Positions 18,289-45,778 of a stretch of DNA of 64,000 nucleotides are shown here, piece by piece. Position numbers and translations under genes: made by a program. Every line of letters starts with the position of its first letter. Position 1 is the stretch's first letter. Location: the IMG/VR virus record IMGVR_UViG_3300010403_000705, positions 62,001 through 126,000 of that record. One strand, written 5' to 3'. Below the pieces are notes generated by a model. It did not search any database. It saw nothing but the letters and a program-made list of their open reading frames with translations, and was not told the DNA's origin.

Positions 18289-18837
18289 ATGATTATTAAA
18301 AATGATGAAGAGTTACTAAGAATTAAATGTGATAATGTAACTGAAGATGAAGTTGGATCACTTATTGAATTGTTAGAAAATGAATTAAATGCAGCTAATA
18401 GGCTGGGTGTGGAAGGTATAGGATTATCAGCTATTCAAGTGGGTGTGCGTAAGAATATTGCTATTGTTAGATTAAAAGATATATCTTTTAACTTAGTAAA
18501 TTGCACAATCAATCAAGCTTATGATCCTGCTATTTTTAGACAAGAAGGATGTTTATCATTTCCTGGACGAGTAGAAGATACTATAAGATTCCAAGAAATT
18601 CACGTTGTTGATAATTTAGTGTATCCTCACAATTTTATAGCTACTGGTCTATTATCTGTAATATGCCAACACGAAATTGATCATTTGAATGGTGCATTAT
18701 TTATGGATCGTGTGAATAGTATAAATACAGTTTCAAGAAAAAAAAATAAGCTTGGACCAAATGATCTTTGTATTTGTGGCAAAGTAGATCCACGTACTAA
18801 ACATCCTAAAAAATTTAAAAAATGTTGCGGTAAATAG
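18289..18837 (+). CDS. def: peptide deformylase with C-terminal SEC-C motif
   Basis: GIGLSAIQ, EGCLS, QHEIDHLNG; tail KLGPNDLCICG...KKFKKCCGK. Confidence 0.93.
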   Translation: MIIKNDEELLRIKCDNVTEDEVGSLIELLENELNAANRLGVEGIGLSAIQVGVRKNIAIVRLKDISFNLVNCTINQAYDPAIFRQEGCLSFPGRVEDTIRFQEIHVVDNLVYPHNFIATGLLSVICQHEIDHLNGALFMDRVNSINTVSRKKNKLGPNDLCICGKVDPRTKHPKKFKKCCGK

Positions 18838-19160
18838 TGAATTTATATAATTTATTTAATATAAATCTTCCGGTATGTTTTTATTGTTCATCTAAATGTA
18901 TTTCTCGAGGTCACAATATATTTTGTTGTGAGATATGTAAACATGAATATTTAAAAAATGATGTTTGTTTTGTGATGCAATGTAAAGATATTTTTATTAC
19001 ACATTCTCCGTTCGTGCCTTATCATTTTTCTATAGCATATAAAGAGTGGGATACTAAAAATGATTTTTCTGTACAGATAGAAATTCCATCATTTGATATA
19101 ACTAAAATGGATGAAGAAAAACTTTATAATAAAATAAAATTATATATAACGTTTACTTGA
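18837..19160 (+). CDS. hypothetical Zn-ribbon protein with C-terminal ..KIKLYITFT
   Basis: CFYC, CEIC; GTG start overlaps the def stop. Confidence 0.55.
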   Translation: MNLYNLFNINLPVCFYCSSKCISRGHNIFCCEICKHEYLKNDVCFVMQCKDIFITHSPFVPYHFSIAYKEWDTKNDFSVQIEIPSFDITKMDEEKLYNKIKLYITFT

Positions 19161-19166
19161 GGGCGT

Positions 19167-19385
19167 ATGGATAAAAAACAAGCAAAAGAATTAACTAATG
19201 ATGTATTGATTGCTGATGTTCTAATTAGATTGAAAGCGATAGAGACTTTATTAATTGCAAAAAATATTTGTACCGAAGAAGAGTTAAAAAAGCAAATAAA
19301 GAGTGTAACAGAATTAATAACTCTTTCTATTTTGCAAAAATCAAATGTATCGGGTGATTTAAATAAAATTATTCAAGAATTGTGA
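19167..19385 (+). CDS. hypothetical protein
   Basis: 72 aa helical ORF, GAGG RBS. Confidence 0.6.
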   Translation: MDKKQAKELTNDVLIADVLIRLKAIETLLIAKNICTEEELKKQIKSVTELITLSILQKSNVSGDLNKIIQEL

Positions 19386-19388
19386 TAA

Positions 19389-19697
19389 ATGTACTATTTA
19401 ACTCAAGAATGTGATTTAATTATAAGTGATAAAGTGCAAGTTTTGTATTTTTATGCAACATGGATGCCACATCATAACAAGATGTTATCAATGATAGATA
19501 AAATGGAGCAAAAATATAAAAATGTAGAATTTATTGCAATTGATGTCGATTTTTTCAAAAATTTATGCAAACGTTTTGAAGTAGAATCTATTCCAATAGT
19601 TATTATATTAAACAACGGAAAAGCCATTAAAAGGATTGAAGGGTTAGTATTAACGAGTGCATTTAAAAATGCATTTGCTGATATATTTAAATTATAG
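19389..19697 (+). CDS. thioredoxin-fold protein lacking CxxC
   Basis: FYATWMPHH in place of FxAxWCxxC; IDVD, FEVESIP (cis-Pro), NGK...IEG retained. Confidence 0.8.
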   Translation: MYYLTQECDLIISDKVQVLYFYATWMPHHNKMLSMIDKMEQKYKNVEFIAIDVDFFKNLCKRFEVESIPIVIILNNGKAIKRIEGLVLTSAFKNAFADIFKL

Positions 19698-19700
19698 GAG

Positions 19701-20003
19701 ATGATAATGAATAAAAAAAATAAAGAACATCAATCTAAAAACAATCCACCAGCTTTGAGATCAGAATCAGAAAAAATATGGAATGAAATTAAAAACTTAA
19801 AACTAGAAATGTTTACTTTGCCTAATCAATTTGTATATATGTATTACAAACCAATTACTATTGATCCTGCTAAATTACATTTAACTGCTTTAACTTCAGC
19901 TACTTCAGTTTTACCTGCATTAGAAAATGCATTATATCCTCAATATCAAGTTGAGCAAGTTGATAGATTTATTCTTGTTACTCTAGCACCAGTAAAAAAA
20001 TGA
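19701..20003 (+). CDS. hypothetical protein
   Basis: 100 aa ORF, AGGAG RBS. Confidence 0.6.
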   Translation: MIMNKKNKEHQSKNNPPALRSESEKIWNEIKNLKLEMFTLPNQFVYMYYKPITIDPAKLHLTALTSATSVLPALENALYPQYQVEQVDRFILVTLAPVKK

Positions 20004-20009
20004 GGAATT

Positions 20010-20504
20010 ATGCCATTTGATGAAGAAGATGAAAAACCATCGAATTATCCTCCAAAGGTAGCTTTAAAAAAAGTTAGCACCCAAAAATCTATTTTTGAGA
20101 CTCAACCTAGAAAACCTTCTGCGGAAGAATTTGAAAAAAAAGTACAACAAGTTCAAGATAGAGCATTTAGTTATAAAACTAAGGCTGCCGAATTAGCTTT
20201 GCAATTTAATAAAGCAATGACTGATCGTACTCTTAAATCTAATAAAACTGTTTTTTCTATTGAGATTGAACAAGATTTGCTTGCGAAAATGATTCAATTA
20301 GCCATCGAAATAAATGCTGACCCTATAGAACAAGAAGGAATGGGATCATTAAGTTGGATTACTTTATTATTAAAAACTTGTTTTACGCAAAGGGATAGAA
20401 TAAATTTTCTAGAATATTCTTTATCGCAAATTGATAAAAAAATGGAATCAATAATTATTCGAGAGATTAATAAATCTCTTGACAAGAAAAAGAACAATGA
20501 ATAA
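20010..20504 (+). CDS. hypothetical protein
   Basis: 164 aa ORF, GAGG RBS. Confidence 0.65.
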   Translation: MPFDEEDEKPSNYPPKVALKKVSTQKSIFETQPRKPSAEEFEKKVQQVQDRAFSYKTKAAELALQFNKAMTDRTLKSNKTVFSIEIEQDLLAKMIQLAIEINADPIEQEGMGSLSWITLLLKTCFTQRDRINFLEYSLSQIDKKMESIIIREINKSLDKKKNNE

Positions 20505-20507
20505 GTT

Positions 20508-20687
20508 ATGGTAACTAAGGAATTATTATTATTTCTCATTTCCGAGGAAAAAGAAAATTTTAGTAGGTATTCACAGTTATGTACAAATTATCAAATTTCT
20601 CTGGACCCGTTAGCAGTAGCCAAACATCAGGGTATTATGGAGATTCTACAGAAACTTCTACAGGAAAAAAATTCTACCAGGACTTGA
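20508..20687 (+). CDS. small hypothetical protein missed by ORF track (59 aa)
   Basis: MVTKELLLFLISEEKENFSRYSQLCTNYQISLDPLAVAKHQGIMEILQKLLQEKNSTRT; starts 3 nt after the previous stop and ends in a TTGA overlap with the next gene. Confidence 0.55.
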   Translation: MVTKELLLFLISEEKENFSRYSQLCTNYQISLDPLAVAKHQGIMEILQKLLQEKNSTRT

Positions 20688-21205
20688 TAAGAAAAGCAGA
20701 TTCAGTACCAATAACTAGATTATTTAAACATTATAATTTACGAATTAATGATCAAAATAGAAAAATAATATGTCCTTTTCCTACTCATAAAAGTGGAAGA
20801 GAAAGTTCGCCTTCTTTTTATTTTTATCCACAAACTAATAGTTTTTGGTGTTTTGGATGTAAAATAGGAACAAGATGCTGCGATTTAATTGCTAATATGG
20901 AGAATATTTCCAGAACTAAAGCAGCATTTAAAATATTAGAGTTGTTTAAATCTGATGTAGATGATGATGCTGTTTTGATTGATAGAGATAACTTTTCTGA
21001 AAAGTTATCTCTAATGTTGAGTTTTTCTGAGCATGTTAGAAACTTTATACATTATAATAATGATGAAAAATCTTTATTATTCATCGACCATGTGTGTGAG
21101 GTTTATGATACGGTAAATGCAAAGCATCATTTGAGTAATGATGCTTTGCAATCTGTAATAAGTCAATTAAAAGAAAAGATAGATTCTTATACATTATATG
21201 TCTAA
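20684..21205 (+). CDS. stand-alone CHC2 zinc-finger (primase zinc-binding domain) protein
   Basis: CPFPTH...ESSPSF...NSFWCFGC; TTG 20684 start preferred over ATG 20579. Confidence 0.85.
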   Translation: MIRKADSVPITRLFKHYNLRINDQNRKIICPFPTHKSGRESSPSFYFYPQTNSFWCFGCKIGTRCCDLIANMENISRTKAAFKILELFKSDVDDDAVLIDRDNFSEKLSLMLSFSEHVRNFIHYNNDEKSLLFIDHVCEVYDTVNAKHHLSNDALQSVISQLKEKIDSYTLYV

Positions 21206-22397
21206 TATCATTATACTTGGAGATCCACATTTAGGAAAAAGCTTATCTCAGGGCAGAGTTGGCATTGGGTCTAACTTAAATAGTCGTATTGTAGATCAGC
21301 TTAATCTTCTTGATTGGACCTTGGATCAAGCAATAGATTTATCTATAGATCATATAGTAATAACAGGAGATATTTTCGAAGATCCTAGACCACCTCCTTC
21401 ATTAATTACTTTATTCATTTCTTGGTTAAAAAAATGCCAAGCTAATTCTGTGCATGTTCATTTAATTTTGGGCAACCATGATATACTGCGCAGTGGTTTT
21501 ATTTACTCCTCTCCATTAGATATTATTAGTGAGGTAGAATTAGAAAATGTTGATGTGTATAAAAATATTAATACAATCACTATTGATACAACTGCTATAA
21601 CTTTAATGCCGTTTCGAGATCGAAAAGCCCTAGGAGCATCAACAAATAGTAATGCTCTTTCTTTACTAAAAGAATATTTAGTATATGAATTAGCTAGTAT
21701 GCCTATTACTTATAAAAAAGTTTTAATAGGACATTTAGCTATCGAAGGCTCTATTCCTATTGGTGATGAAATTGATGATATAAGTAATGAATTATTTTGC
21801 CCATTAGATATGTTTAATGGTTATGATTACGTTTGGATGGGGCATGTGCATAAGCCCCAAATTATGAAAAAACAGAAACCATATATTGCACATATTGGTA
21901 GTATGGATATTTCTAATTTTGCCGAAATCGATCACAGTAAACATATAATTATACTTAATTGTTCTTCAAATCAAGAATTTATAACAAAAAAGTTACCGAC
22001 TAGACCATTAAAAAAAATATCTATTGTAATTCCCAAATTTGTTGAAGATACTACTAAGTACGCTATTCAATGTATTAAAGATATGAATAAAGATTTGAAC
22101 AAATCTACAATAAGAGTGGAAATTGCACTAGAAAGCCCTGAACTACAATCAATTGACAAATCTGCAATAGAAAAATACTTAATTAATCAAGGCGTTTTTA
22201 ATATTACTGGTATCTCGGAATCTAAAAAAGCTATTTTGATAAAAAAAGATAATTATAATACTCTGGATACCAAAATAGATGTACCATCCGCCATTAAAAA
22301 ATATAGTTCCATTTATGTAGAAGAAAATCAAAGGTCTGATTTTATCAACTTAGCTATGGAAATTTATAATTCTTATAAGGTTGAATTAAAAGAATGA
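21198..22397 (+). CDS. sbcD: SbcD/Mre11-like metallophosphoesterase nuclease
   Basis: GDPHLG, TGDIFE, GNHD, GHL, MGHVH. Confidence 0.9.
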   Translation: MSNIIILGDPHLGKSLSQGRVGIGSNLNSRIVDQLNLLDWTLDQAIDLSIDHIVITGDIFEDPRPPPSLITLFISWLKKCQANSVHVHLILGNHDILRSGFIYSSPLDIISEVELENVDVYKNINTITIDTTAITLMPFRDRKALGASTNSNALSLLKEYLVYELASMPITYKKVLIGHLAIEGSIPIGDEIDDISNELFCPLDMFNGYDYVWMGHVHKPQIMKKQKPYIAHIGSMDISNFAEIDHSKHIIILNCSSNQEFITKKLPTRPLKKISIVIPKFVEDTTKYAIQCIKDMNKDLNKSTIRVEIALESPELQSIDKSAIEKYLINQGVFNITGISESKKAILIKKDNYNTLDTKIDVPSAIKKYSSIYVEENQRSDFINLAMEIYNSYKVELKE

Positions 22398-24610
22398 AAC
22401 CATCAAAATTATATATTGAAAATTTCATGTGCCACGAAAAAAGTTATATTGATTTCGCGGAATTTAATTCCGCGCTCATTGTAGGAAAGATAGAGAATAA
22501 TGAAAATTATTCTAATGGTGTTGGTAAAACATCTATATTTAAGGCAATTGAATATGTATTGTTTAATCAAGCAGACATTAATTTAGAAAAAATTATAAGA
22601 GATGATACTAATTTTTGTAGAGTAGTATTTGATTTTTTTGTAGGAGATCAAGAATATCGTATTTCTCGTAAAAGAACAAAAAAAGGTGTTACTGATCTAA
22701 CTTTATTGCACAAAAATACGATTATTGGTGATGTATCAGAAGTTTATCATACTAATTATGATGAAACGTATGAGCCATTAAGTAATGAAAAATATTGGAA
22801 AGATATTTCTGGTAGAAGATCCGCTGATACAGAAAAAGAGTTAGAAAAATTAATAAAGATTAATTTTAAATCCTTTAGAAGTACAGTGCATTTTTTACAA
22901 AATGATTTTTCAGGACTTACTACTTCTACTCCAGAAAAAAGAAAAGCTTTATTTAAGGACGCTTTAAATTTAATTATTTATTCTAAATTAGAAAAAATAG
23001 CAAAAGACAAAGCTAATGTGATATCCAAAGATTTAGAAAAACATAAAATATTAATAGATTCTTTAGGTGATGTTAAAACAGATATTAACAAATTACAACA
23101 GCAATGTTTGTTACTAGAAGAACAATTGGATCATAATAATAAATTGTTAATTGATCCAACTAATCAACTAAATGTAATAAACAACAATTTATCAAATTTA
23201 AATTCTTCTTATAAAGATCTAGAAAATAAATATAATATTTTATTAGAGAAAGAAAAATCAATTTTATCTGATAAAGTAAGAATAGAAAATTCTATTACAG
23301 AATATCAAAACAAAAAAACAATAGCCATCAAAACGGCAAAAAATATTGTTGATGACATCAAAAATTCCAAAGAAACACTTAAATCATTAAGTGAAATTGA
23401 TCTAAACCAAATAGAGATCTTAAATGATAAAATAAATGAACTTAAACAAAAGATAACTTATTACAACATCATTATACAGAACAATATCGTAGAATTTGAA
23501 GAATTAAAAATACCCGTTCCTGACGAAAGTATCTGTAAACATTGTCGCCAATATATGACAGATGAGCATAAGAAAATCTGTAAGTCCAAGATCATTCAAG
23601 ATATGGATAAATGTCAGCAGAATATCTCTATGGCAAAAAAAGAAATATCTATTTTTAGTAACGAAGTAAATATTCTACAACAAAAGTTAAGTGCTTTGAT
23701 TCGATGTAAACAACAAATAGAAGATATAAATAATAAGATTTTATCAAAAAATATAGATTTGCAAAACAAAAAGAATATTCATAATGAATATTCGTTATTA
23801 GTAAATAAATTTACAGAAGATCTCAAAATAAAAGAAAGTGAATATTCATTATTAAAAAGTGAATTATCTAATTCTTCTTTATTAGAAGCTAAATTTATTC
23901 AGGAATCTATTAATGTTCAAAACCAAAATATGGTTAAAGTACAATCATGTATAGCTTCTATAAATAAAGAAATAGCGCATTTAAATGCATCCAAGGCTGT
24001 AGCGCTATATACTATAGATGAAAAAACAAAAGATTTATTAAAAATAGATTTTCTAAGGAATAAAATTCAAGAGCTAGAAAAAAAATATAGTATATATCCA
24101 CAAGTTCTGCAAGCTTTTTCCTCTACTGGAATACCAAATCTAATAATTCAAAATGTACTCGATGATTTACAAGCAAAAGCTAATACATTATTATCGCAAT
24201 TAAAACCTGGTTTACAGTTATCTTTTCTTATAGAAAAAGTAAAAGGAGATGGCACTGAAGCAGATACTTTAGATATTCATTATAATGTAAATGGAAAGGA
24301 AAGATATTATGAGCAGTTATCTGGTGCCATGAAGTTAGCGGTAACTTTTAGTTTAAAGCTTGGATTATCTTTTCTTTTGCAGGAAATGGTAGGTACTGAT
24401 ATTAAGTTCTTATTATTAGATGAAATAGATCAATCACTGGATAAAGCAAGTGTAGATGCATTTGCAGATATTGTGAAATTTTTTCAGAAAGACTTCACGA
24501 TATTAATCATTACTCATAATGATAGATTAAAAGATAAATTTTCACATGCTATATTAGTGGAACAAGATGTCAATATGATATCTAGAGCTAAGGTAGTCAG
24601 TAATTGGTAA
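22394..24610 (+). CDS. sbcC: SbcC/Rad50-like SMC ATPase
   Basis: NGVGKTS, coiled coils with CKHC hook, LSGA, LLLDE, ITHN. Confidence 0.92.
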   Translation: MKPSKLYIENFMCHEKSYIDFAEFNSALIVGKIENNENYSNGVGKTSIFKAIEYVLFNQADINLEKIIRDDTNFCRVVFDFFVGDQEYRISRKRTKKGVTDLTLLHKNTIIGDVSEVYHTNYDETYEPLSNEKYWKDISGRRSADTEKELEKLIKINFKSFRSTVHFLQNDFSGLTTSTPEKRKALFKDALNLIIYSKLEKIAKDKANVISKDLEKHKILIDSLGDVKTDINKLQQQCLLLEEQLDHNNKLLIDPTNQLNVINNNLSNLNSSYKDLENKYNILLEKEKSILSDKVRIENSITEYQNKKTIAIKTAKNIVDDIKNSKETLKSLSEIDLNQIEILNDKINELKQKITYYNIIIQNNIVEFEELKIPVPDESICKHCRQYMTDEHKKICKSKIIQDMDKCQQNISMAKKEISIFSNEVNILQQKLSALIRCKQQIEDINNKILSKNIDLQNKKNIHNEYSLLVNKFTEDLKIKESEYSLLKSELSNSSLLEAKFIQESINVQNQNMVKVQSCIASINKEIAHLNASKAVALYTIDEKTKDLLKIDFLRNKIQELEKKYSIYPQVLQAFSSTGIPNLIIQNVLDDLQAKANTLLSQLKPGLQLSFLIEKVKGDGTEADTLDIHYNVNGKERYYEQLSGAMKLAVTFSLKLGLSFLLQEMVGTDIKFLLLDEIDQSLDKASVDAFADIVKFFQKDFTILIITHNDRLKDKFSHAILVEQDVNMISRAKVVSNW

Positions 24611-24625
24611 AACAAAAGGTAAATT

Positions 24626-24895
24626 ATGAATACAGAAGAATTTGAAGCAGCGGTACGCGCAGAATGTAATACTCTTGCTGATATGTTGGTAGAAAAAAAT
24701 CGTGCTTATGGCAATAGCGCTTTATCGCCTGTACGTATTTTTTCAAAATCTCCTATTGAAGAACAAATCCTTGTGCGTATAGATGATAAATTATCTCGTT
24801 TAGCACGAGGAAACAACGCTGGTGAAGATGTAATATTTGATCTCTTAGGATATTTAATTTTGTTACGCATCGCTCGACAATCTAAAAAGCTATAA
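24626..24895 (+). CDS. nucleotide modification associated domain 1 (DUF1599-like)
   Basis: KNRAYGNS...VRIDDKLSRL...EDVIFDLLGYLIL. Confidence 0.75.
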   Translation: MNTEEFEAAVRAECNTLADMLVEKNRAYGNSALSPVRIFSKSPIEEQILVRIDDKLSRLARGNNAGEDVIFDLLGYLILLRIARQSKKL

Positions 24896-24973
24896 AATAG
24901 TATCGTTATTTTGACATTTAATAAAATGATAACAAATCATGTTATCTTAAAATAATTGAATGTGTAATACAAA

Positions 24974-25963: not shown

Positions 25964-26290
25964 ATGAAACAAAAAAGTGGACAAGAAATATTTTATACTG
26001 ATATCAATGTTATGATAACATCTATTAAACAATTTACGCAAGATAATTGTGCATATGTAGAAATTCACGATGATCTAAAAAGATTATATTATGGTTGGTT
26101 TTGTCCAAAAACTAATACATATTTTTATATGCAAGCTTCTCATTTTAGAAATCAAAGAAAAGGTCTCGCCCTACCTTTTGATTCATATTTAAAAAGAAAA
26201 ATAGCTAGTATACCATTGAGTAATTGTAAAAATGATAAAGAATATAATTCTCTTAAAGAAAAACTTAATAAATTGAAAGCATTTTGGTGA
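25964..26290 (+). CDS. hypothetical protein with C-terminal LKAFW tag
   Basis: 108 aa, ends KEKLNKLKAFW. Confidence 0.6.
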   Translation: MKQKSGQEIFYTDINVMITSIKQFTQDNCAYVEIHDDLKRLYYGWFCPKTNTYFYMQASHFRNQRKGLALPFDSYLKRKIASIPLSNCKNDKEYNSLKEKLNKLKAFW

Positions 26291-26562
26291 CGTTTAGTAT
26301 GATTAATTATTTACCGTGGAAAAAAATAAACGAAATACTTTATGAAAAAAGGTGTATAGATAATAGTCATACATCAAGTATTAAGTTGAGATATCATTGT
26401 AATGGTTATGGTTGGGTCCCAGAATTTTATAATAAATTAATGGGAGATCTGTATATACAGTATAATCCAGATTATTATATATCTATTATTGATATACATT
26501 ATGTAACACAATATATAGACAATTTTATAAATAGATACAATAATTTATTAGTATTTATGTGA
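26284..26562 (+). CDS. hypothetical protein with C-terminal LLVFM
   Basis: 92 aa, ends FINRYNNLLVFM. Confidence 0.55.
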   Translation: MVTFSMINYLPWKKINEILYEKRCIDNSHTSSIKLRYHCNGYGWVPEFYNKLMGDLYIQYNPDYYISIIDIHYVTQYIDNFINRYNNLLVFM

Positions 26563-26605: not shown

Positions 26606-27394
26606 ATGTCTAATGAATTACGATTATCTGTTAGTAAAACAAAGACATTCTTAGATTGCAAGGCAAAATATAAATATTCATATATTGAAAAATTGCCTAA
26701 AAAAGATTGGGAATTTCATACATTTGGTAAATTTTGTCACAAGGTGTTGGAAGATTTTCATAATGCATATATTAATGGCTCATCAGAGCCATATAATATA
26801 GTAATGTCAAAAGCATTTAAAGATTCATTGAATGAATATAAATCTGTTATGACAACAGAAATGAGGCGAGATTGTTGGAAAATTATTGATCAATACTTAA
26901 AAATTGTAAGTAGTGATAAAAAAAATAATTTATCTGCCAATGTTATTGCTTGCGAAAAAAATTTCGAATTTTTAGTAGGCGGTAAAGTTATTTTAAATGG
27001 TATGATTGACAGGATACAAATTGATGACGATAATGTAATACATGTTTGTGATTATAAAACAGTCAAAAATAAAAAATATTTAAAAAATGATTTTTTCCAA
27101 TTATTAACATACGCATATGTTATAATTTCTGAAGACCCTTCAATTGAAAAAGTTCGCGCCTCATATATTTTGCTTAGACATGATTTTGAATATATTACTA
27201 CTGAATTTACTGTTCCAGAAATTTTGAAGATTCAAGATAAGTATCTTGAATATGCTAATCAGATTTTAAAAGAAAAAGAATATGCTCCCAATCCAACTGC
27301 TTTGTGTAATTTTTGTGATTATTTGAATATGTGTCCAGAAGGTAAAGCAAAGTCTTATGGGCAGAATATTTATGGAGAGGTAACGTATGGGTAA
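26606..27394 (+). CDS. PD-(D/E)XK RecB/Cas4-like exonuclease
   Basis: LSVSK..FLDC, H..LE, CEKNF, GMIDRI, DYKT, QLLTY, C-terminal CxxC...C Fe-S ligands. Confidence 0.88.
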   Translation: MSNELRLSVSKTKTFLDCKAKYKYSYIEKLPKKDWEFHTFGKFCHKVLEDFHNAYINGSSEPYNIVMSKAFKDSLNEYKSVMTTEMRRDCWKIIDQYLKIVSSDKKNNLSANVIACEKNFEFLVGGKVILNGMIDRIQIDDDNVIHVCDYKTVKNKKYLKNDFFQLLTYAYVIISEDPSIEKVRASYILLRHDFEYITTEFTVPEILKIQDKYLEYANQILKEKEYAPNPTALCNFCDYLNMCPEGKAKSYGQNIYGEVTYG

Positions 27395-27590
27395 CAATTA
27401 CTATTTTACATACGAAACTAATCAGTATAAAATATATTACATGTACGAAGCACCTACTCCACATAGATTAGATGGACCCGCAATTGAATACGCAAATGGC
27501 ACAAAAGTGTGGTGTTATAAGGGAAAAATTATATCCTGTTCTTCACAAGAACAATTTGAAAAATATTTAAAAATGAAAATTTTTTGGTAA
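27387..27590 (+). CDS. HRxDGPA-repeat small protein with C-terminal MKIFW tag
   Basis: HRLDGPAIEYANGTKVWCYKGK; ends SQEQFEKYLKMKIFW. Confidence 0.7.
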   Translation: MGNNYYFTYETNQYKIYYMYEAPTPHRLDGPAIEYANGTKVWCYKGKIISCSSQEQFEKYLKMKIFW

Positions 27591-29940: not shown

Positions 29941-30606
29941 ATGGTTAATAATGGTGCTGGATCTATTGAAGACATCAGAAAAAAAGTCACTTATACACAT
30001 GAGTTAATATCTACTGCTTATCATGAGGCTGGACATACAATATATGGTTTACTGCATTGTATGAAAGTTAATATGGTACATATTTTTGAAAATAAAAAAT
30101 CAAAAAGAGTATGTGGTTTTACCCATTTTAATTATCCTGTAGCCAGTGACGTAGATGATCCGGAATTATCTCAAAAATTAATGAAGGCTGAAATTTGTCT
30201 TAATTACGCAGGTTTAGCTGCTGAAAAATATCATTTTAAGAATGTTTCAGGATCTGATAGATTTCCAGGATATTGGAAAAATGGATCGTCTAGCGATACT
30301 ATGGCTGCGGCTGCTTTAATAAAACAATATGATTTAGTCCCTCCAGGAAAGAAAAGACATTTTTTTAAAAATAAATTAATTAAAGAAACTGAGAAACAAT
30401 TACAACAACATTGGGATGTTGTTGTAATTGTTTCTCATGCTTTATTCCGAAAAAAAAGATTATATTTTTCTGATTTAAAAAGTTTATTAACGAAGAAATC
30501 TGCAAATAAAGAATTTTGGAAAGAGCAATTTAAGCGTATTGATTATATTTTTAAAAATGGATATGACCTTGACGAGAAAAATTTAAAATTTATATTGATG
30601 CAATGA
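29941..30606 (+). CDS. stand-alone M41 (FtsH protease domain-like) metallopeptidase
   Basis: TAYHEAGH, GFT, YAGLAAE, GSSSD, LQQHWDVV..VSHAL. Confidence 0.8.
   Translation: MVNNGAGSIEDIRKKVTYTHELISTAYHEAGHTIYGLLHCMKVNMVHIFENKKSKRVCGFTHFNYPVASDVDDPELSQKLMKAEICLNYAGLAAEKYHFKNVSGSDRFPGYWKNGSSSDTMAAAALIKQYDLVPPGKKRHFFKNKLIKETEKQLQQHWDVVVIVSHALFRKKRLYFSDLKSLLTKKSANKEFWKEQFKRIDYIFKNGYDLDEKNLKFILMQ
30569..30596 (+). promoter_or_regulatory. candidate sigma70 promoter
   Basis: TTGACG-N16-TATATT, followed by TGATATAT at 30604-30611. Confidence 0.4.
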
Positions 30607-39797: not shown

Positions 39798-40114
39798 TGT
39801 CTAGCGATATAGCAATAGCAGTTACAGGTCTACCAAATGCAATGTCAACGTCAAAAAAGCCATCTTATTTAATAATTTTAGAAGATAATAATACAAAAAG
39901 TAAAGTTGTTAAAAAATTTATTACGCTTGATAAGCCAGAACTTTTGCAGGGTTTTGTTCAAGCAAAGGGTTTTTTTTCTGAAGCACCTGAAGAAGAAATA
40001 ATTAAAAATTTTTCTGAACTCTTGACTTCTACTTCTAAGGATTTAATATTAGAAGTGTTAATACCGTGGCATAAAATTTCTTATATGAGAAGTTTAATTT
40101 TTAAACAAAAATGA
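39797..40114 (+). CDS. hypothetical protein
   Basis: 105 aa ORF coupled to recA. Confidence 0.6.
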   Translation: MSSDIAIAVTGLPNAMSTSKKPSYLIILEDNNTKSKVVKKFITLDKPELLQGFVQAKGFFSEAPEEEIIKNFSELLTSTSKDLILEVLIPWHKISYMRSLIFKQK

Positions 40115-40557
40115 TATTTACTAATCAAGCGCTAAATAATGTAAAATTTTTAAATGAACTTGTGTTAATTGGGGAGGACTTTGATGCTGAAAACCACGTA
40201 ATTGAATTTTTAAATATTATTGATTTCTCTAGCAAAATAACAACACTCAAAAAATTGATTCTAGATATGGAAGTACAAATAGTTAGGTGGGATCTGGCAG
40301 CCACAGATTTATTTTTCAATTCAGATCTGTATCAATATGTTATTGATACATTAGGAAAAGATTTGTATAGAAAGAATGGTTCCATTTACTTATGGGACAT
40401 CCAGTTACATTTTTTAGACGATTTCATATCTGATAGAATCCTATGCTTGAATAGATATTTAGAGAACCTTGAAACATTGAAGACCAGATATATTTCTGTT
40501 GCAAAAATAGATACAAAAATTGTAAAAAGATTATTAGATTTAAAAGCATTTTGGTAA
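40111..40557 (+). CDS. hypothetical protein with C-terminal LKAFW tag
   Basis: 148 aa, ATGA overlap, ends IVKRLLDLKAFW. Confidence 0.6.
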   Translation: MIFTNQALNNVKFLNELVLIGEDFDAENHVIEFLNIIDFSSKITTLKKLILDMEVQIVRWDLAATDLFFNSDLYQYVIDTLGKDLYRKNGSIYLWDIQLHFLDDFISDRILCLNRYLENLETLKTRYISVAKIDTKIVKRLLDLKAFW

Positions 40558-40576
40558 GGAAAGTGAGAGTAATAAA

Positions 40577-40954: not shown

Positions 40955-41674
40955 ATGACAACATTTGGTGAAATATCATACAATGATGAAGTATATGGTG
41001 ATAGAAAAATTAATAATTCTAAAGATCTTTTCTTAAGATTAGATGAAGGCGATAATGAATTGAGATTGTTGACAAATCCTTTTCAATATTTAGTACACAA
41101 AATTAAAAAAGATCCAACAAATCCTAAGGATTTTGGACAAAAGGTACCTTGTTCGGCAATTCATGGAAGTTGTCCAGCGTGTGCTGGTGATAAAGCCAAA
41201 CCCCGTTGGTTGTATGGTGTAATAGTCCGTAAAACTGGTACATATAAAATTTTTGATGTATCATTTGCTGTATTTTCTCAAATAAGAAAACTAGCCAAGA
41301 ATCCTCGTTGGGGAGATCCTACTAAATATGATATTAATATTGTAGTAGATAAAAATGGAGGCGCAACTGGATATTATTCAGTGCAACCTATTCCTAAAGA
41401 ACCATTATCTGGCGAAGATCAAAGAACCAAAGATAATGCTGATTTGGATGATCTAAAACGTAGGGTAACTCCACCTACTGCTGATGTAGTTCAAAAAAGA
41501 CTTGACAAGATTTTTGGAGATGTATCCTTTAATGATGTGTCTGCTCAAGTAGCATCATCTACAAAAAAAGAAAATAATATTAGAAAAACCATCTCACCTA
41601 ACAAAACACAAGCTGTAAGTATGTCGGATGATGAAAATGTGGATGAATTTCCAGATTATGACGGTCAATCTTAA
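40955..41674 (+). CDS. single-stranded DNA-binding protein (T4 gp32-like)
   Basis: FLRL..GDNELRLL, H/C Zn ligands (C...CPAC), GDPT.YDI.I, acidic C-terminal tail ending DEFPDYDGQS. Confidence 0.75.
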   Translation: MTTFGEISYNDEVYGDRKINNSKDLFLRLDEGDNELRLLTNPFQYLVHKIKKDPTNPKDFGQKVPCSAIHGSCPACAGDKAKPRWLYGVIVRKTGTYKIFDVSFAVFSQIRKLAKNPRWGDPTKYDINIVVDKNGGATGYYSVQPIPKEPLSGEDQRTKDNADLDDLKRRVTPPTADVVQKRLDKIFGDVSFNDVSAQVASSTKKENNIRKTISPNKTQAVSMSDDENVDEFPDYDGQS

Positions 41675-41835: not shown

Positions 41836-41932
41836 TTAGATCGTATTGTTACAAAAAGGATATGTTAAAGCTAATATAGAAGTTATATCTTATAGAGCTA
41901 ATAGGATAAAAAATAATGCTAACCTTTTCTAA
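41836..41932 (+). pseudogene. frameshifted HNH homing endonuclease remnant
   Basis: LDRIVTK-(frameshift)-GYVKANIEVISYRANRIKNNA matches the SLDRI...KGY..GN..VIS.RAN..K HNH core. Confidence 0.7.
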
Positions 41933-41972
41933 TTATAAAGCATTGTTTCATTCTTAAGAATATGGAGATAAA

Positions 41973-42536
41973 ATGAAAACGGTGCTTGGTTTTGATGTAT
42001 CTAGTTCCACAATTGGCTGGTGTGTTTTAGAAATTAGTGATGAGAGTATTATAAAATATACTGATTCTGGATATTTTAAGCCCGTTAAAAAAGGATCTAT
42101 AATTGATCGCTTGGTCGATACTAGAAAAAAAATACAAGATATTATCTATAAATATAAACCAGATTATATTGGTATTGAAGATTTAATAAAATTTATGCCT
42201 AAGAGCACTGCTACAACTGTAGTAATGTTAACAACTTTTAATCGTATGGTATGTCTAACTTCTTATGATTATTTAACTAGTAATCCAGGTTTATTTAATG
42301 TTATGAGTATTAGGCACGGATTAAAAATCTCTAAAATAATTCCAAAAAAAGAAGATATGCCAGAACTTGTGTCTAAACATCTAGGAATTATTTTTCCCTA
42401 TGAGAGAGTATTAAAAGGCAAGAAAAATGGTACAATAAAAATAGAAAATTATGATAGGGCAGATGGCATGGCAGTGGCTTTATATTATGCATTTTTGTTA
42501 ACGGGAAAAATTAAGCACAAGGGCAAGAATAAATGA
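41973..42536 (+). CDS. ruvC: RuvC-like Holliday junction resolvase
   Basis: VLGFDVSSSTIGW, KPDYIGIED, DRADGMAVA. Confidence 0.85.
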   Translation: MKTVLGFDVSSSTIGWCVLEISDESIIKYTDSGYFKPVKKGSIIDRLVDTRKKIQDIIYKYKPDYIGIEDLIKFMPKSTATTVVMLTTFNRMVCLTSYDYLTSNPGLFNVMSIRHGLKISKIIPKKEDMPELVSKHLGIIFPYERVLKGKKNGTIKIENYDRADGMAVALYYAFLLTGKIKHKGKNK

Positions 42537-43477
42537 ATCTATCAGAAGCGTATTCAATTTTAGAATTATCACCCAATTCTTCAGCGGATGAAGTTAAAAA
42601 AAAGTACAGAGAATTTACAAAAAAATATCATCCAGATATTAATAAAGAAGAAAATTCTGAGGATAGGTTTAAGAAAATTAATGAGGCTTATAACTGTATA
42701 AATAATGGGAAAAATTCGGACGCTGATTCATTTACTGGTTTTCATAACCCTTTTGTGAATAAGACTACCTTCCAAGCTGAAAATATCCAACTATATACGA
42801 CAATTTCTTTTAAAGAATCTGTTTTAGGGTGTCAAAAAGAACTATGTTTTAGTAGGAATAGTAAATGCACGAATTGTAATGGTAATGGTTTTATTCGTAT
42901 AAATAATGGATGTGATAGATGTCATGGCAAAGGACAAATTGTTGGTAAACAAGGTAACATGATATTTACACGAACATGTGATAAATGTATGGGACAGAAC
43001 AATTCTTCTCAGTGTAATATATGTTTAGGCACAGGACATGTAAATATGCAGGTGTCAATTAATGTAAATATTCCTGGAGGTGTTGTCAGTGGTAATATTT
43101 TAAGACTAAGTGGTTTCGGAAACTATATAGGTAGTTTTATAAATATGGACCAATATACTGAAGCACACCTACATATAACAGTGATTATGGATGAAGGTTT
43201 AACTTTAGAAAATAATGACGTTATATCCAGGATAAATATTACTTTATTGGAGGCGTTACAAGGATCGCAAAAAACTGTAAAAACTATTCTTGGAGATTAC
43301 ATAATCTCCATACCCCCTTTATCTAAAAACAAAGAAGAAATTAACATACCAAATTTAGGTGTTAATGGAATGGGTAATCAAAAAGTTATATTAGATGTAT
43401 CATATCCATCTAATATACAAGATGTAATTAATGTGTTATCTAATGATGAGGAGTTATTTCCGTGCCATTCTCAATGA
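42533..43477 (+). CDS. dnaJ: DnaJ (Hsp40) chaperone
   Basis: J domain with HPD, CxxCxGxG repeats, C-terminal substrate-binding domain. Confidence 0.92.
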   Translation: MNLSEAYSILELSPNSSADEVKKKYREFTKKYHPDINKEENSEDRFKKINEAYNCINNGKNSDADSFTGFHNPFVNKTTFQAENIQLYTTISFKESVLGCQKELCFSRNSKCTNCNGNGFIRINNGCDRCHGKGQIVGKQGNMIFTRTCDKCMGQNNSSQCNICLGTGHVNMQVSINVNIPGGVVSGNILRLSGFGNYIGSFINMDQYTEAHLHITVIMDEGLTLENNDVISRINITLLEALQGSQKTVKTILGDYIISIPPLSKNKEEINIPNLGVNGMGNQKVILDVSYPSNIQDVINVLSNDEELFPCHSQ

Positions 43478-43815
43478 GTTGTACTAACAAAGGTTGCGGT
43501 AAAACACAAGAACCTTATATTAATATTAAAGATGATAAAGTATATTGTTCTATCTGTGATAGAGAAATATCTAATATTAGTTATTTCGCTAAAGTACAGA
43601 TGAAAAATTTGAAACAATTTAAACAGAAAATTCCTATACCATTTTCTGTTAAATGCAATAAATGTAATAAAGAAGATCGACCTAAATTGATTAAAGATAA
43701 TTTAGTATGTACAGGATGTAATAATCCGTTAGATAATTTATCTTTGCCTTTTAAAAATATGTTAAAACAAAAATTAAAAAATCCATTATCTCAAGATATT
43801 ACAGAAGAAGAATAA
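43462..43815 (+). CDS. double Zn-ribbon protein
   Basis: CTNKGC, CSIC, CNKC, CTGC. Confidence 0.6.
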   Translation: MPFSMSCTNKGCGKTQEPYINIKDDKVYCSICDREISNISYFAKVQMKNLKQFKQKIPIPFSVKCNKCNKEDRPKLIKDNLVCTGCNNPLDNLSLPFKNMLKQKLKNPLSQDITEEE

Positions 43816-43839
43816 TGTTTATGAAAGGTTTAATTCTTT

Positions 43840-44595
43840 ATGTACAGTAAAATTATAGAATCGTGTCAATTTTTGTTACATAATTATCCAGCAGCTCAAG
43901 AATGTAAATATTATTTAGATTCTAGATTATCTTTACAAAGTCAGCATAAATTCCAATTTGGATATTTTCCAAATTTATCTAATTTATCTGCTTTGGTATC
44001 TTTAATCGGAGAAGATATACTTAAAGAGAATAAAATGTTTTATTCTAAAGAAATTAAAGATTCTTTATACCCTAGAACAATAAATTTTTCATATTTTGAT
44101 GATTATCCTTTAATAATGCCCTTCAAGGATGCTTATGGAAATATAATTGCTATTGTAGGTAGGTCTTTATTGTCTGATGCGGAAAGAAAAAATAAAAATA
44201 TATCTAAATATAAAAACACTGTATTTACTAAAGGTAATTATTTGTTTGGTATATTTGAAAACAAACAATCTATTATAAAAAATAATATAGTATATATAGT
44301 AGAAGGACAGTTTGATGTTATTAAAGCATACGAAAAAGGAATGTATAATGTAGTCGGTTTAGGAAGTTCTAATATGACTGCTTATCAATTTTCTGTTATC
44401 AGCAGATACACAAATAATATAGTACTTTTATTAGATAATGATGAAGCTGGAGAAAAAGGCAGGAAACGTATCATGGATAAATTTAGCCAATACGCTAATA
44501 TTCAAAATTTCTATTTACCAGACAATTATAAGGATATGGATGAATTTTTATCTACAAATAGTTATGAAGATTTATCTTTTATTATTAAGAGTTAA
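43840..44595 (+). CDS. dnaG: DnaG-type primase catalytic/TOPRIM domain without zinc-binding domain
   Basis: YLDSR, LIMPF, GRSL, SKYKN, IVEGQFDV, LDNDEAG, KDMDE. Confidence 0.9.
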   Translation: MYSKIIESCQFLLHNYPAAQECKYYLDSRLSLQSQHKFQFGYFPNLSNLSALVSLIGEDILKENKMFYSKEIKDSLYPRTINFSYFDDYPLIMPFKDAYGNIIAIVGRSLLSDAERKNKNISKYKNTVFTKGNYLFGIFENKQSIIKNNIVYIVEGQFDVIKAYEKGMYNVVGLGSSNMTAYQFSVISRYTNNIVLLLDNDEAGEKGRKRIMDKFSQYANIQNFYLPDNYKDMDEFLSTNSYEDLSFIIKS

Positions 44596-44606
44596 AGGAA
44601 ATATTT

Positions 44607-44774
44607 ATGCCACCTATTGTTGATTCTATAGAAGACATTGAAATACATAAAAAACACATTGATAACGATCAGTCAGAAACTTGTGATTTATGTTGGATGG
44701 AAATTCCTTTTACAAAAATAGAACTTTTTATCATTAGCGAAAATTTAGATGAAGGACATTGTTATGAATGGTGA
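44607..44774 (+). CDS. small hypothetical protein missed by ORF track (55 aa)
   Basis: AAAGGA RBS; MPPIVDSIEDIEIHKKHIDNDQSETCDLCW...GHCYEW. Confidence 0.5.
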   Translation: MPPIVDSIEDIEIHKKHIDNDQSETCDLCWMEIPFTKIELFIISENLDEGHCYEW

Positions 44775-45048
44775 GTTTAATTTAAATGATAGCCAAGGGT
44801 TATTTTTAGAATTAGTATCTGGATGTAAATTAATGAAACTAATTGGTGGGGTTTGGTGTACTTCTAATAAAAAATCTCACGAAATAGCAGAAAAATTAAT
44901 TTCCAAAGGATGGTTGATTGAAACTACGACCAAATATTTTAGTATTTCAGGAAATGATAGAAGTTTTGAGTTAACTGAAAAAGGTATGGAAAAAACTATA
45001 GGTATACAGGTTTCTGAAATTGAACCAATAATAGACAGTAGCATATAA
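44749..45048 (+). CDS. small winged-helix-like protein
   Basis: EKLISKGWLI...FELTEKG (wHTH wing motif). Confidence 0.5.
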   Translation: MKDIVMNGEFNLNDSQGLFLELVSGCKLMKLIGGVWCTSNKKSHEIAEKLISKGWLIETTTKYFSISGNDRSFELTEKGMEKTIGIQVSEIEPIIDSSI

Positions 45049-45049
45049 T

Positions 45050-45199
45050 TATAATAGTGATAGTATTATTGAAGAAAAACAAGATGTAAAATTTAATAAA
45101 TTTCTTAGTAGAAGCGAATTATCTAGACAATACAATTGTGGGAAGACAACAATAAGAGATATTTTAATAAGACATGATGTTAAAATATTAAGGAGTTAA
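45050..45199 (+). pseudogene. start-less HTH remnant, probably the 3' end of a homing endonuclease
   Basis: Open frame with no start codon: SRSELSRQYNCGKTTIRDILIRHDVKI. Confidence 0.4.
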
Positions 45200-45202
45200 T
45201 TT

Positions 45203-45646
45203 ATGGTTGAAAAAAGAACTAATCGATCAGATCGCTACCAGTGGGTACTTTTGGAGACAGTTTGTTCAAATGATATGATGGAAGCGTTTTCCAACGAAGA
45301 AAGTATTTATAACAGATTAAATCCCTTTCAATATAGTGAAGATTTAATGAATTTAGAAGATCAATTAAAAAAAGAATTTTGGCGAGTTGTAGAAACTTTA
45401 TTAACTCCTAGACAAAAAGAGGTAATTAAACTATATGCAGATGGCTATACACAAATGGAAATAGCTAAAATGTTAAATGTTAATCAGAGTTCAATTACTA
45501 AATCTTTAAATGGAAATGTTGATTATAAAAATGGAAAAAAAATATATGGCGGAGCTCGTAAGAAGATTAGAAAGATAATAGAAAATGACGATAAAATTAA
45601 AGAGATCTTGAAAAAAATGGATGAGGTTCGTGAATCAAGATGGTAA
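45203..45646 (+). CDS. sigma-70 region 4/LuxR-type HTH transcription factor
   Basis: LTPRQKEVIKL..DGYTQMEIAKMLNVNQSSITKSL. Confidence 0.8.
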   Translation: MVEKRTNRSDRYQWVLLETVCSNDMMEAFSNEESIYNRLNPFQYSEDLMNLEDQLKKEFWRVVETLLTPRQKEVIKLYADGYTQMEIAKMLNVNQSSITKSLNGNVDYKNGKKIYGGARKKIRKIIENDDKIKEILKKMDEVRESRW

Positions 45647-45778
45647 AAATACACTAATATAAATAATTTAATCAGAATACTAAAATGTAAAGCTTTTTGG
45701 TAATGACTACTAATAAAGTATAGAATTTATCAATATTTCTTTATCTATGATAGGTATATTGTATTTACTGGAGACGTA

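Follow-up and report, generated by a model that had tools for sequence, protein, structure and literature searches.

A shared C-terminal tail on small accessory proteins of uncultured megaphages

Short peptides at or near the C-terminus serve as docking or address signals in several systems. Sliding-clamp-binding peptides, including the bacterial beta-clamp motif QL[S/D]LF (or QLxLxL), the PIP box Qxx[L/I/M]xx[F/Y][F/Y] of PCNA- and gp45-type clamps, and the gp45-binding tails of the polymerase, gp33 and gp55 of T4/RB69, are hydrophobic-aromatic elements, often C-terminal, shared by many unrelated clients of one hub. In AAA+ proteases and proteasome activators, a constant C-terminal peptide with a critical penultimate or terminal hydrophobic residue docks different proteins to one machine, as in the ClpX-binding peptide of SspB (..LRVVK) and the HbYX motif, while ssrA-type degrons end in ..LAA and the acidic tip of SSB ends in ..DDDIPF after a flexible linker. 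Encapsulin cargo-loading peptides and microcompartment encapsulation peptides follow flexible linkers and address unrelated cargo to one proteinaceous structure, which in encapsulins has a phage-capsid (HK97) fold. Poxvirus ankyrin-repeat proteins with a PRANC/F-box-like domain form expanded viral paralogue families in which a variable repeat binder is paired with a constant short C-terminal docking element; that system is eukaryotic and ubiquitin-dependent, its docking domain is longer, and it has no sequence relationship to the tail described here. A clade of ~450-kb uncultured megaphages places a tail of different sequence (..R-L-x-K-L-K-A-F-W, then stop) on dozens of otherwise unrelated small accessory proteins, and this tail looks like a new address or docking label.

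The window analyzed is a stretch of 64,000 nucleotides from IMG/VR record IMGVR_UViG_3300010403_000705, part of a ~447-kb megaphage genome. A preliminary description of this window had pointed out that three dissimilar small proteins end in K[A/I]FW, that two others end in looser variants, and that the DNA encoding the ending recurs at four sites. This observation was confirmed and proved stronger than first described: all five C-termini and all four DNA sites are exactly as given, and the pattern AAA-NNN-TTT-TGG-TRR occurs 4 times on the + strand and 0 times on the - strand. Residue composition gives a probability of 4.6e-6 per terminus, and hence 4e-4 expected in 88 genes, whereas three were found (P(>=3) ~1e-11); only 8 of 20,000 residue shuffles gave even one such terminus. 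A 12-residue PSSM built only from relatives scored the three genes at 22–25 bits, whereas the best of 19,099 internal windows of the window's proteins scored 6.8.

The first of these genes, at 25964..26290 (+), encodes a 108-aa accessory protein (family F4) ending in ..EKLNKLKAFW, with the tail coded by about 26243-26287 (PSSM 23.6 bits). It occupies a variable slot between a conserved 326-aa gene and a PDDEXK nuclease gene, has no Pfam or PHROG hit, and has an orthologue only in the relative L210 (41% identity, tail ..NKLKAFW kept; relatives are designated here by L numbers); the same slot in L211 holds a MORN-like tail gene, and most relatives have none there. The second, at 27387..27590 (+), encodes a 67-aa probable MORN-variant protein ending in ..SCSSQEQFEKYLKMKIFW, with the tail coded by about 27543-27587 (22.3 bits). 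It belongs to an expanded paralogue family in which the tail is canonical (C-S-S-Q-E-E-F-E-R-L-I-K-L-K-A-[FL]-W), with invariant C51, S53, Q54, F57 and W67, and its AF2 model (pLDDT 80) comprises predicted beta-hairpins plus a helix at residues 54-65, with FW outside the helix. The third, at 40111..40557 (+), encodes a 148-aa accessory protein (family F1) ending in ..IVKRLLDLKAFW, with the tail coded by about 40510-40554, and is inserted after RecA and a 105-aa gene. Orthologues occur in L010-L013 and L016 at 21–34% identity, in which 4 of the 13 invariant columns are K-A-F-W, but the gene is absent from the same place in L003-L008. The AF2 model of this protein (pTM 0.73) shows a core of pLDDT 83–91 and a helix at 135-147, whereas the last four residues have pLDDT <50, so that in the model the tip is not packed.

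The fourth DNA site, at 45683-45703, is not the end of a gene. It lies in an 18-codon stretch at 45647..45703 (+), ending in ..NLIRILKCKAFW, which is by chance in frame behind the TAA stop of a sigma-70 region-4-like gene at 45203..45646 (+; 147 aa) and which scores 18.2 bits with the PSSM. Programmed read-through of the sigma-like gene is not supported, because all 120 listed homologues stop at the same W at about 146–147 aa, apart from a few called with longer N-termini. Instead, the stretch aligns with the last ~50 nt of an intact gene in L010/L012/L013, only these nucleotides being kept, indicating that it is the 3′ remnant of a deleted gene of family F0 (module LYDILxDExKLxxLVxKLKxKAFW). 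The sigma-like gene itself does not carry the tail, but the slot just downstream of it is a hot spot for tail-bearing genes and homing endonucleases in relatives.

In relatives of this megaphage (GC 0.28–0.45), the tail sits on at least 15 sequence-unrelated scaffolds (17 BLAST-unrelated clusters) and on large arrays of MORN-variant paralogues, and at least 12 carriers, three of them ..AFL/..VFL variants, were found in about 84 kb sampled from the window's own genome. Its position is locked to the terminus: KAFW is terminal 24 times and internal 0 times in 1,592 ORFs; 91 of 5,596 ORF ends score >=15 bits with the PSSM, against 2 of 648,108 internal windows; all 79 hits with E<=1e-3 among 1.84 billion proteins end at the last residue; and all 43 IMG/VR matches to a degenerate DNA pattern are in frame at ORF ends. 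The ending is absent from tail-less members of the MORN-variant family, and no match was found in 185,579 cellular genomes. Profile-profile comparison (hhalign) of the carrier families aligns only the last 6–18 columns, and the probability falls to <2% after trimming 6 residues, while the tail is the most conserved part of its carriers, as seen in the F1 and F0 alignments.

A core dNMP kinase gained the tail in one sublineage: in L210/L211 the kinase domain ends near residue 193 and is followed by ..SADEFRRILKLKSFL, whereas seventeen other relatives have the gene in the same slot without it. This tail ends in L, not W, however, and could be a decaying fusion remnant rather than a functional gain. 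The tail genes lie between SbcCD, PDDEXK, DnaE, RecA, sigma, UvsW, DnaB, RNR, RNase T and dUTPase genes, and none lies in the structural part of the window.

One condition named in advance as fatal to the idea of a portable tag, that the carriers prove to be full-length homologues of one family, is fulfilled only in part: 27387 belongs to the MORN-variant family in which the tail is native, and 25964 shares a weak ~18-residue C-terminal similarity with it, but 40111 and most other carriers are unrelated. The protein 27387 and most carriers have HRxDGPAxE..G.K.W repeats, as in MORN-variant repeat proteins (Pfam DUF6745/MORN_2-like, "YwqK-type" immunity proteins); the repeats are obvious in the alignment, although DUF6745 gave only faint or sub-threshold hits (24.2 against a cut-off of 27) and 27387 itself had no Pfam hit.

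The codons of the tail bear on whether selection acts on the peptide or on the DNA. The third position of the Ala codon is fully randomized (GCA 4, GCC 5, GCT 7, GCG 5), all six Leu codons are used, Leu and Arg codons differ at first and third positions, and carriers span GC 0.29–0.45, indicating selection on the peptide. The proposal in the preliminary description of a conserved 3′ recombination end for gene cassettes is not supported, as there is no DNA conservation beyond the codons of the peptide, the tail DNA of two genes in one genome is only 37/66 identical, and the flanks are unrelated. A DNA- or RNA-level element (cassette end, homing site or regulatory signal) that only happens to be translated is therefore very unlikely, although homing endonuclease genes share the same variable slots, a 3′ remnant survives in the window, and TAA stops are used in 20 of 23 cases. 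In addition, Lys(-3) is biased (AAA 68 : AAG 5, against 40 : 15 at Lys(-5)) in a manner not explained by codon-pair context, which hints at some additional nucleotide- or translation-level constraint; the bias for TTT at Phe, in contrast, is explained by the general TTT-TGG codon-pair preference.

The best explanation of these observations is that the tail is a clade-specific C-terminal module of about 13–18 residues, with the consensus [S/D]-x-E-E-F-E-R-L-[I/L]-K-L-K-A-[F/L]-W-COOH, forming a short helix that ends in two large hydrophobic residues at the free carboxyl end. In this view, it is native to the expanded MORN-variant family and has been grafted onto many unrelated small accessory proteins, probably by in-frame fusion to 3′ ends of existing tail genes. 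Most likely it is a docking signal: the variable N-terminal part (MORN hairpins, zinc ribbon, other small folds or, in one lineage, a dNMP kinase) would do the specific job, and the constant tail would tether it to one common partner through a pocket that reads the terminal aromatic residue and the carboxylate. The existence of the tail, its strict terminal position, selection at the protein level, portability, clade restriction and genomic setting are established by the sequence analysis, whereas binding to a common partner is inferred by analogy; the docking reading as a whole is regarded as about as likely as not. The interpretation in the preliminary description, a portable tag that recruits diverse cargo to one hub (capsid-loading or injection machinery, a clamp, or the phage ClpP/AAA protease), is accordingly supported in part, for the portable protein-level element but not for any hub. 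The leading candidates for the partner, which remain conjectural, are a replication or nucleoid hub such as a sliding clamp, or a protease or chaperone machine.

With respect to clamps, the tail's [L/M]-K-A-[F/L]-W can be matched to the h-x-x-a-a core of a PIP box, and the carriers lie among replication genes. In a profile of 87 unique tails, L/M/I occupies the h4 position in 64 and an aromatic pair-like F/L-W is present, but the Q position is L/K/I and W rather than F/Y is terminal. The bacterial beta-clamp pentapeptide does not fit: with F/L at -1 taken as its final residue, -5 is K (52), -4 is L (49), -3 is K (69) and -2 is A (60), an extra invariant W follows, there is no Q, and only the L and F positions agree. 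Furthermore, the context is basic rather than acidic or neutral, most carriers are tiny MORN-like proteins in tandem arrays, and no clamp gene (no DnaN-family Pfam hit) was seen in the ~125 kb of this genome that was annotated.

A C-terminal degron, marking early or accessory proteins for timed destruction by a phage or host AAA+ protease, is a possible but unlikely alternative. The strict need for the free C-terminus, the hydrophobic or aromatic end preceded by basic residues, and the carriers being small accessory proteins of the early/replication region are compatible with it, as are the candidate machines: a pair of ClpP-family proteins at 4529-5709, a classic-clade (VCP/YjoB-like) AAA ATPase at 13225-14544 and an M41-like (FtsH-protease-like) fragment at 29941-30606, or host ClpXP, Lon or FtsH. 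However, the tails end in [F/L]-W and do not resemble ssrA-type ..LAA ends. The HbYX motif does not fit either, the penultimate residue being F (46) or L (40), and Y only once in 87 tails, nor does the SspB ending, and there is no evidence of an unfoldase-ClpP pairing. The protein after the ClpP pair resembles virion proteins, albeit only weakly (score 0.73, below the lead threshold of 0.9), so ClpP could be a head-maturation protease. A degron on a core dNMP kinase is hard to rationalize, and it would seem costly for more than 30 tandem paralogues all to keep a perfect one.

Equally tentative is a capping or oligomerization helix that arose in the MORN-variant family and stabilizes small domains, or makes them dimerize or co-assemble, without any separate hub. 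No Gly/Pro-rich flexible linker precedes the tail (in the 15 residues before it, Pro is 0.8% and Gly 6.6%, against 4.2% and 7.4% in the protein bodies); in the model of the MORN member the helix follows the last strand directly with fair confidence (block pLDDT 89, then 73); the hydrophobic moment is low with a broad hydrophobic surface; and the similarity between families extends to 13–18 residues, a whole helix rather than a 4-residue tip. The helix could therefore be an integral structural or self-association element. Against this, a purely structural helix need not end exactly at the last residue in every one of >100 cases, nor keep an invariant terminal Trp across unrelated folds; KAFW has pLDDT <50 in the F1 model, and the dNMP kinase folds without the tail in 17 relatives.

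The tail might also be an address label for a phage-built structure, loading cargo into the capsid for injection or directing it to a replication compartment, although this appears still less likely. One short terminal helix on many unrelated cargo proteins is the logic of encapsulin and microcompartment targeting peptides, there are many carriers per genome, and the genome encodes a tubulin/TubZ-like protein. However, the consensus differs from those of such peptides, no linker precedes the tail, the carriers sit in replication and nucleotide-metabolism regions rather than with head genes, no shell gene lies next to them, no shell or chimallin gene was identified, and a dNMP kinase is an odd capsid cargo. 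In the most far-reaching reading, considered unlikely, these megaphages would run their own protein-addressing system, in which a linear C-terminal "zip code" is read by a single phage-encoded receptor and directs dozens of diversifying small effectors, and occasionally enzymes, to one phage-built site such as the replication factory, a tubulin-positioned compartment or the capsid interior, new cargo being recruited simply by in-frame fusion to a tail. If true, this would be the first portable linear targeting signal of its kind described for a bacteriophage.

A membrane-targeting amphipathic helix, like the C-terminal helices of MinD or FtsA, is very doubtful. The helix is Lys/Arg-rich, ends in Trp and has a mean net charge of +1.4 over the last 14 residues, but the mean hydrophobic moment is only 0.26 +/- 0.10, 29 of 87 tails have a net charge <=0, the canonical MORN tail is neutral, and the conservation of K-A-F-W is far tighter than lipid binding requires. 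The basic or neutral charge and the lack of a linker likewise distinguish the tail from the acidic tip of SSB, although a separate gp32-like candidate at 40955-41674 does carry an acidic ..FPxYD tail.

The two looser variants in the preliminary description are not counted as members. The 92-aa gene at 26284..26562 (+), ending in ..NNLLVFM, is marginal: it scores only 7.0 bits against the internal maximum of 6.8, and its one orthologue, in L210, ends in ..KLLVFL. It is possibly a degenerate variant, since ..LLVFW, ..LLVFL and ..IFLF occur in clear family members. The 107-aa gene at 18837..19160 (+), ending in ..KIKLYITFT, scores -9.6 and belongs to a second C-terminal class, ..[KR][IM]K[TL]x[IV][TN]F[STG]; the same ending occurs on 188–204-aa paralogues in L137 and L194, with 4 terminal matches against 1 internal match in 720,856 residues.

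The 64-kb window has a GC content of 29%, carries nearly all of its genes on the + strand, and belongs to a 447,666-bp metagenomic contig (ENA ERZ27256657 k141_5300428), of which a 100%-identical 432,844-bp contig is present in IMG/VR. No DNA similarity to deposited phages was detected, and single-protein scans of IMG/VR with the products of genes 40111–40557 and 25964–26290 found only the window's own genome. Precomputed Pfam hits for the called genes, together with our own scans, identified HU, a DksA-like protein, two ClpP-family genes, an FtsK-like ATPase, topoisomerase, a classic-clade AAA ATPase, ribosomal protein S21, an MT-A70 methylase, peptide deformylase, thioredoxin, SbcD and SbcC, a PDDEXK nuclease, trigger factor, an FtsH-protease-like fragment, a DnaE-type polymerase, RecA, RuvC, DnaJ, DnaG primase, a small sigma-region-4 protein, a CCA/polyA polymerase and a large terminase. 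Outside the window, the same genome also encodes a tubulin/TubZ-like protein, a class-I release factor, an IF1/eIF-1a-like protein, a SET-domain protein, ThyX, RNR, PhoH and a second sigma-like protein. Hundreds of relatives exist in metagenomes, with contigs of up to 506 kb and GC contents of 0.28–0.45, indicating that this is an uncultured megaphage clade.

In a preliminary description based on the sequence alone, the genes at 25964–26290, 27387–27590 and 40111–40557 were said to share a C-terminal ending, with looser variants at 18837–19160 and 26284–26562 and matching DNA ends at 26270–26290, 27570–27590, 40537–40557 and 45683–45703. This observation was confirmed, as the five C-termini and the four DNA sites are exactly as described. 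The enrichment of K[A/I]FW at C-termini, which had been set beforehand as a test, is far beyond chance: the motif occurs at three of 88 termini, whereas 4e-4 are expected from composition (P ~1e-11), and only 8 of 20,000 shuffles produced even one such terminus. A 12-residue scoring matrix built only from the tails of relatives gives 22–25 bits to the three genes, while the best of 19,099 internal windows of the window's proteins scores 6.8. Apart from the ending, the three proteins are not detectably related to each other; BLASTP found nothing for two pairs and only a weak alignment anchored on the tail for 25964 against 27387.

The site at 45683–45703 is not the end of an intact gene, but lies in 18 codons that follow, in frame, the TAA stop of the sigma-like gene (45203–45646). 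When the two pieces were searched separately, all 120 listed sigma homologues were found to end at the same Trp at about 146–147 aa, apart from a few called with longer N-termini, and there is no conserved read-through extension; read-through of the sigma stop was therefore rejected. In close relatives (loci L010, at 10445–10630, L012 and L013), a separate small gene begins just after sigma and ends in KLKMKAFW, and the 18 codons of the window align with only the last ~50 nt of that gene, its 5′ part being deleted, so that the gap at 45647–45778 holds a relic. Frameshift and promoter readings of TTTTGGTAA were considered by eye and dropped, because no consistent downstream frame or −10 element follows. 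The slot downstream of sigma is a hot spot, in which relatives hold one to three tail-bearing genes as well as GIY-YIG homing endonucleases (loci L004:10483–11169 and L005:9284–9991).

To examine the tail in relatives, 80 sigma-centred and 24 nuclease-centred loci (designated by L numbers), plus others, were retrieved. In the window plus an initial set of the sigma-centred loci (1.17 Mb), KAFW is terminal 24 times and internal 0 times, and over 5,596 ORFs from all loci used, the matrix reaches 15 bits or more at 91 ORF ends and at 2 of 648,108 internal positions. As an independent test, a profile built from 32 flush-right 30-residue ends of all families was run against 1.84 billion representative proteins; this search gave 79 hits at E<=1e-3, every one of which ends at the last residue of the protein. 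The residue before the terminal Trp is F in some lineages and L in others. A degenerate DNA pattern for F-E-[K/R]-h-h-[K/R]-h-K-A-F-W-stop has 0 matches in 596 Gb of bacterial and archaeal genomes, but 43 matches in IMG/VR, all in frame at ORF ends, on contigs that include known members of this clade; a scan of the same cellular genomes with the MORN-plus-tail alignment also found no relative. A scan with a 15-nt pattern gave at least seven long-ORF hits with a helix-plus-tail ending, including two elsewhere in the window's genome (L127, L154), one in a 446-kb relative (L137), two shown by synteny to be clade members (L129, L194), and a sixth (L104) that comes from the same sample as the clade loci L012/L211 but lacks synteny evidence. 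A protein search with a 40-residue tail region, intended to find bigger annotated carriers, returned only the query.

Among 23 unique tails, the Ala codon is GCA in 4, GCC in 5, GCT in 7 and GCG in 5; all six Leu codons occur, Arg replaces Lys through AGR or CGN, and the flanks are unrelated. In addition, two tails within one genome share only 37 of 66 nt. These observations indicate that selection acts on the peptide, and a nucleic-acid element is regarded as a remote possibility. One oddity remains, in that the Lys three residues before the end (e.g., window 26276–26290 and 40543–40557) uses AAA 68 : AAG 5, while the Lys two residues further upstream uses 40 : 15; the per-locus expectation was 7.5 AAG against 1 observed, and general Lys-Ala codon-pair usage (36% AAG) does not explain it. 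TAA is the stop in 20 of the 23 unique tails. This unexplained bias may reflect the start region of the closely following gene, whereas the TTT preference is explained by the general TTT-TGG pair bias.

After removal of the last 14 residues, the carriers fall into 17 BLAST-unrelated clusters. Profile-profile comparison of five families aligns only their last 6–18 columns (probabilities 12–87%), and nothing remains once six residues are trimmed (<2%). The largest cluster is a MORN-variant family to which 27387 belongs; most members end in C-S-S-Q-E-E-F-E-R-L-[I/L]-K-L-K-A-[F/L]-W, and some members lack the ending. This family forms tandem arrays, with more than 30 copies in 28 kb of L205/L206, eight just upstream of sigma in L061, and 19 or more matches on one 91-kb contig. 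The arrays in L205 (ENA ERZ27279678, a 42.7-kb contig), L206 (16.6 kb), L061:5042–9154, L243 and L248 comprise up to about 20 small (70–200 aa) paralogues, separated by 0–5 nt and all ending in the tail, interspersed with LAGLIDADG, HNH and GIY-YIG genes, an OmpA-like gene and a Kelch-repeat gene. The other carriers are a family just downstream of sigma with a ~30-residue module, LYDILxDExKLxxLVxKLKxKAFW, on quite different N-terminal parts; the 40111 family, in which only 13 columns are invariant at 21–31% identity, four of them being K-A-F-W; a zinc-ribbon protein; the 25964 family; and about ten singletons. The window's own genome holds at least nine more carriers in two other sampled regions, three of which are AFL or VFL variants. 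Pfam and PHROGs searches with 25 or more tail-bearing proteins gave nothing except the dNMP kinase described below.

A core enzyme has gained the tail in L210 and L211, the closest relatives of the window. Their dNMP kinase is well identified (Pfam DNMK 6e-15; PHROG 139 2e-38, matching residues 1–193 of 213) and continues into VKFDSADEFRRILKLKSFL, whereas 17 other relatives have the kinase in the same slot after SbcC, ending about 19 residues earlier with unrelated sequence. This shows directly that the module can be added to an existing protein, although this copy ends in Leu rather than Trp and may be decaying. Together with the relic in the window, it suggests in-frame fusion to surviving 3′ ends as the route. 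The kinase gene, which is found after SbcC in 19 of the 23 loci of nuclease-centred relatives (L208–L230, at about 5,000–6,600), is missing at that place in the window (24611–24973), where an 89-aa ORF (24626–24895) sits instead.

An AlphaFold2 model of 27387 with 26 homologues (pLDDT 80) gives MORN-like hairpins followed by a predicted helix at 54–65, with the final F-W outside the helix; Foldseek found nothing with this model. In a model of 40111 with 5 sequences (pTM 0.73), the core has pLDDT 83–91, the tail helix at 135–147 has about 65, and the last four residues are below 50. Foldseek matches of this 148-aa protein are weak (E 1e-3 to 0.3) but are almost all HK97-fold major capsid proteins and encapsulins, plus small uncharacterised proteins of jumbo phages, suggesting a truncated HK97-like domain; an ESM Atlas search with 40111 gave only weak LRR/F-box-like feature neighbours. 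No Gly/Pro-rich linker precedes the tail, the hydrophobic moment is low (0.26), and net charge averages +1.4, with a third of tails at or below zero. The predicted picture is thus a short helix attached directly to the domain, with an unpacked aromatic tip, which is neither a classic flexible-linker peptide nor a membrane helix; the membrane-helix reading is regarded as very unlikely, while a structural or self-association helix is unlikely but ranks, with a degron, first among the alternatives to docking.

The carriers sit in variable slots between core replication, recombination, transcription and nucleotide-metabolism genes: SbcCD, PDDEXK, trigger factor, RecA and sigma in the window; UvsW, DnaC-like, DnaB and RNR in L127; and RNase T, dUTPase, IMPDH and ThyX in L154. 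These slots are often shared with homing endonuclease genes, and no carrier is located in the terminase and structural part of the window. An address for the capsid or a compartment is considered less likely than a degron or a structural helix.

The strict end position and invariant terminal Trp, the conservation exceeding that of the carriers, the portability and the clade restriction argue for a functional peptide read from the free C-terminus. The most economical reading, held with moderate confidence, is a docking signal that would tether variable modules to one partner. The existence of the tail, its terminal position, the selection on the peptide, its spread over unrelated carriers, its restriction to one clade and its genomic setting are established by the analysis, whereas binding to a common partner is inferred, the mechanism is unproven, and no partner was identified. 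The preliminary interpretation, that the ending is either a portable tag recruiting diverse cargo to one hub or a conserved 3′ recombination end for gene cassettes, is partly supported, since the ending is portable at the protein level but the recombination end is not supported. A clamp-type replication hub fits several points, namely the h-x-x-aromatic-aromatic core, the genomic setting and the kinase, and it parallels T4, in which polymerase and late sigma share a clamp-binding tail. However, the beta-clamp consensus is not matched, and no clamp gene was seen in the parts of the genome annotated. Profile searches of PDB sequences for a clamp or SSB with three conserved neighbouring genes (35291, 36834 and 40955) were not significant. 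Protease or chaperone machines are also encoded (ClpP twice, an AAA ATPase, DnaJ and trigger factor), and the tail might alternatively be a degron, although this is unlikely. The two adjacent ClpP-family genes (4529–5709) are followed, after two small ORFs, by a gene for a 485-aa protein (6450–7907); an Atlas search with this protein as a possible unfoldase or receptor gave only weak neighbours, the nearest being virion structural proteins with a score (0.73) below the lead threshold, and the ClpP pair could be a head-maturation protease rather than a cytosolic protease.

Shared C-terminal docking peptides are already known as a kind; what is new here is the sequence, its scale within a genome, its coupling to tandem MORN-variant arrays and its restriction to one megaphage clade. 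Literature searches found no paper containing the motif string and none linking MORN repeats or DUF6745 to such arrays in phages. If the tail is a docking or address signal, it gives a handle on a large block of "dark" genes in huge phages, because dozens of otherwise unannotatable small proteins per genome would share one partner, the discovery of which would place them all in one pathway, and it would also provide a ready-made 16-residue tag for recruiting arbitrary proteins to that partner. The pairing of a variable small binder with a constant tail, amplified in tandem arrays, parallels the repeat-plus-docking families of large eukaryotic viruses and suggests a general route to genome gigantism. 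Even if the tail proves to be a degron or an assembly helix, it is a sharply defined and easily testable sequence rule, restricted to one viral clade and absent from the cellular genomes scanned.

The gene at 18837–19160, which had been listed as a looser variant of the tail, instead carries a second, different ending, [K/R]-[I/M]-K-[T/L]-x-[I/V]-[T/N]-F-[S/T/G]-stop, preceded by LP(L/S)(I/F) about 20 residues upstream; it is found on proteins of 107–204 aa, including ORFs of 188 and 204 aa on the − strand of L137 and L194:12214–12798, and is terminal 4 times and internal once in 720,856 residues. Several core DNA and transcription proteins (window 45203–45646, 22394–24610 and 26606–27394, and orthologues in L003–L088 and L208–L230) keep a Trp as, or next to, their last residue across the clade: sigma ends in R[D/E]EKW, SbcC in VVSSW, and the PDDEXK nuclease in GEVNW (GEVTYG in the window). 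In the window, W is the last residue of 6 of 88 proteins, against about 0.8% W in the pooled proteins of the window and relatives. A conserved 239-aa protein (40955–41674 and orthologues) has an invariant C-x4-H-x2-C-x2-C cluster and an acidic C-terminus, DDE..FPxYD, and is possibly a gp32-like zinc SSB with its own docking tail, although its PDB profile search was, as stated, not significant. Finally, the DnaE-type polymerase gene, which is one ORF of 1,170–1,184 aa elsewhere, is split into two ORFs of about 900 and 415 aa in three relatives (L213:11434–15534, L220:11459–15663 and L226:11416–16326), with an extra 351-aa ORF between them in L226, which could represent an intein or homing-endonuclease insertion, or a split gene.
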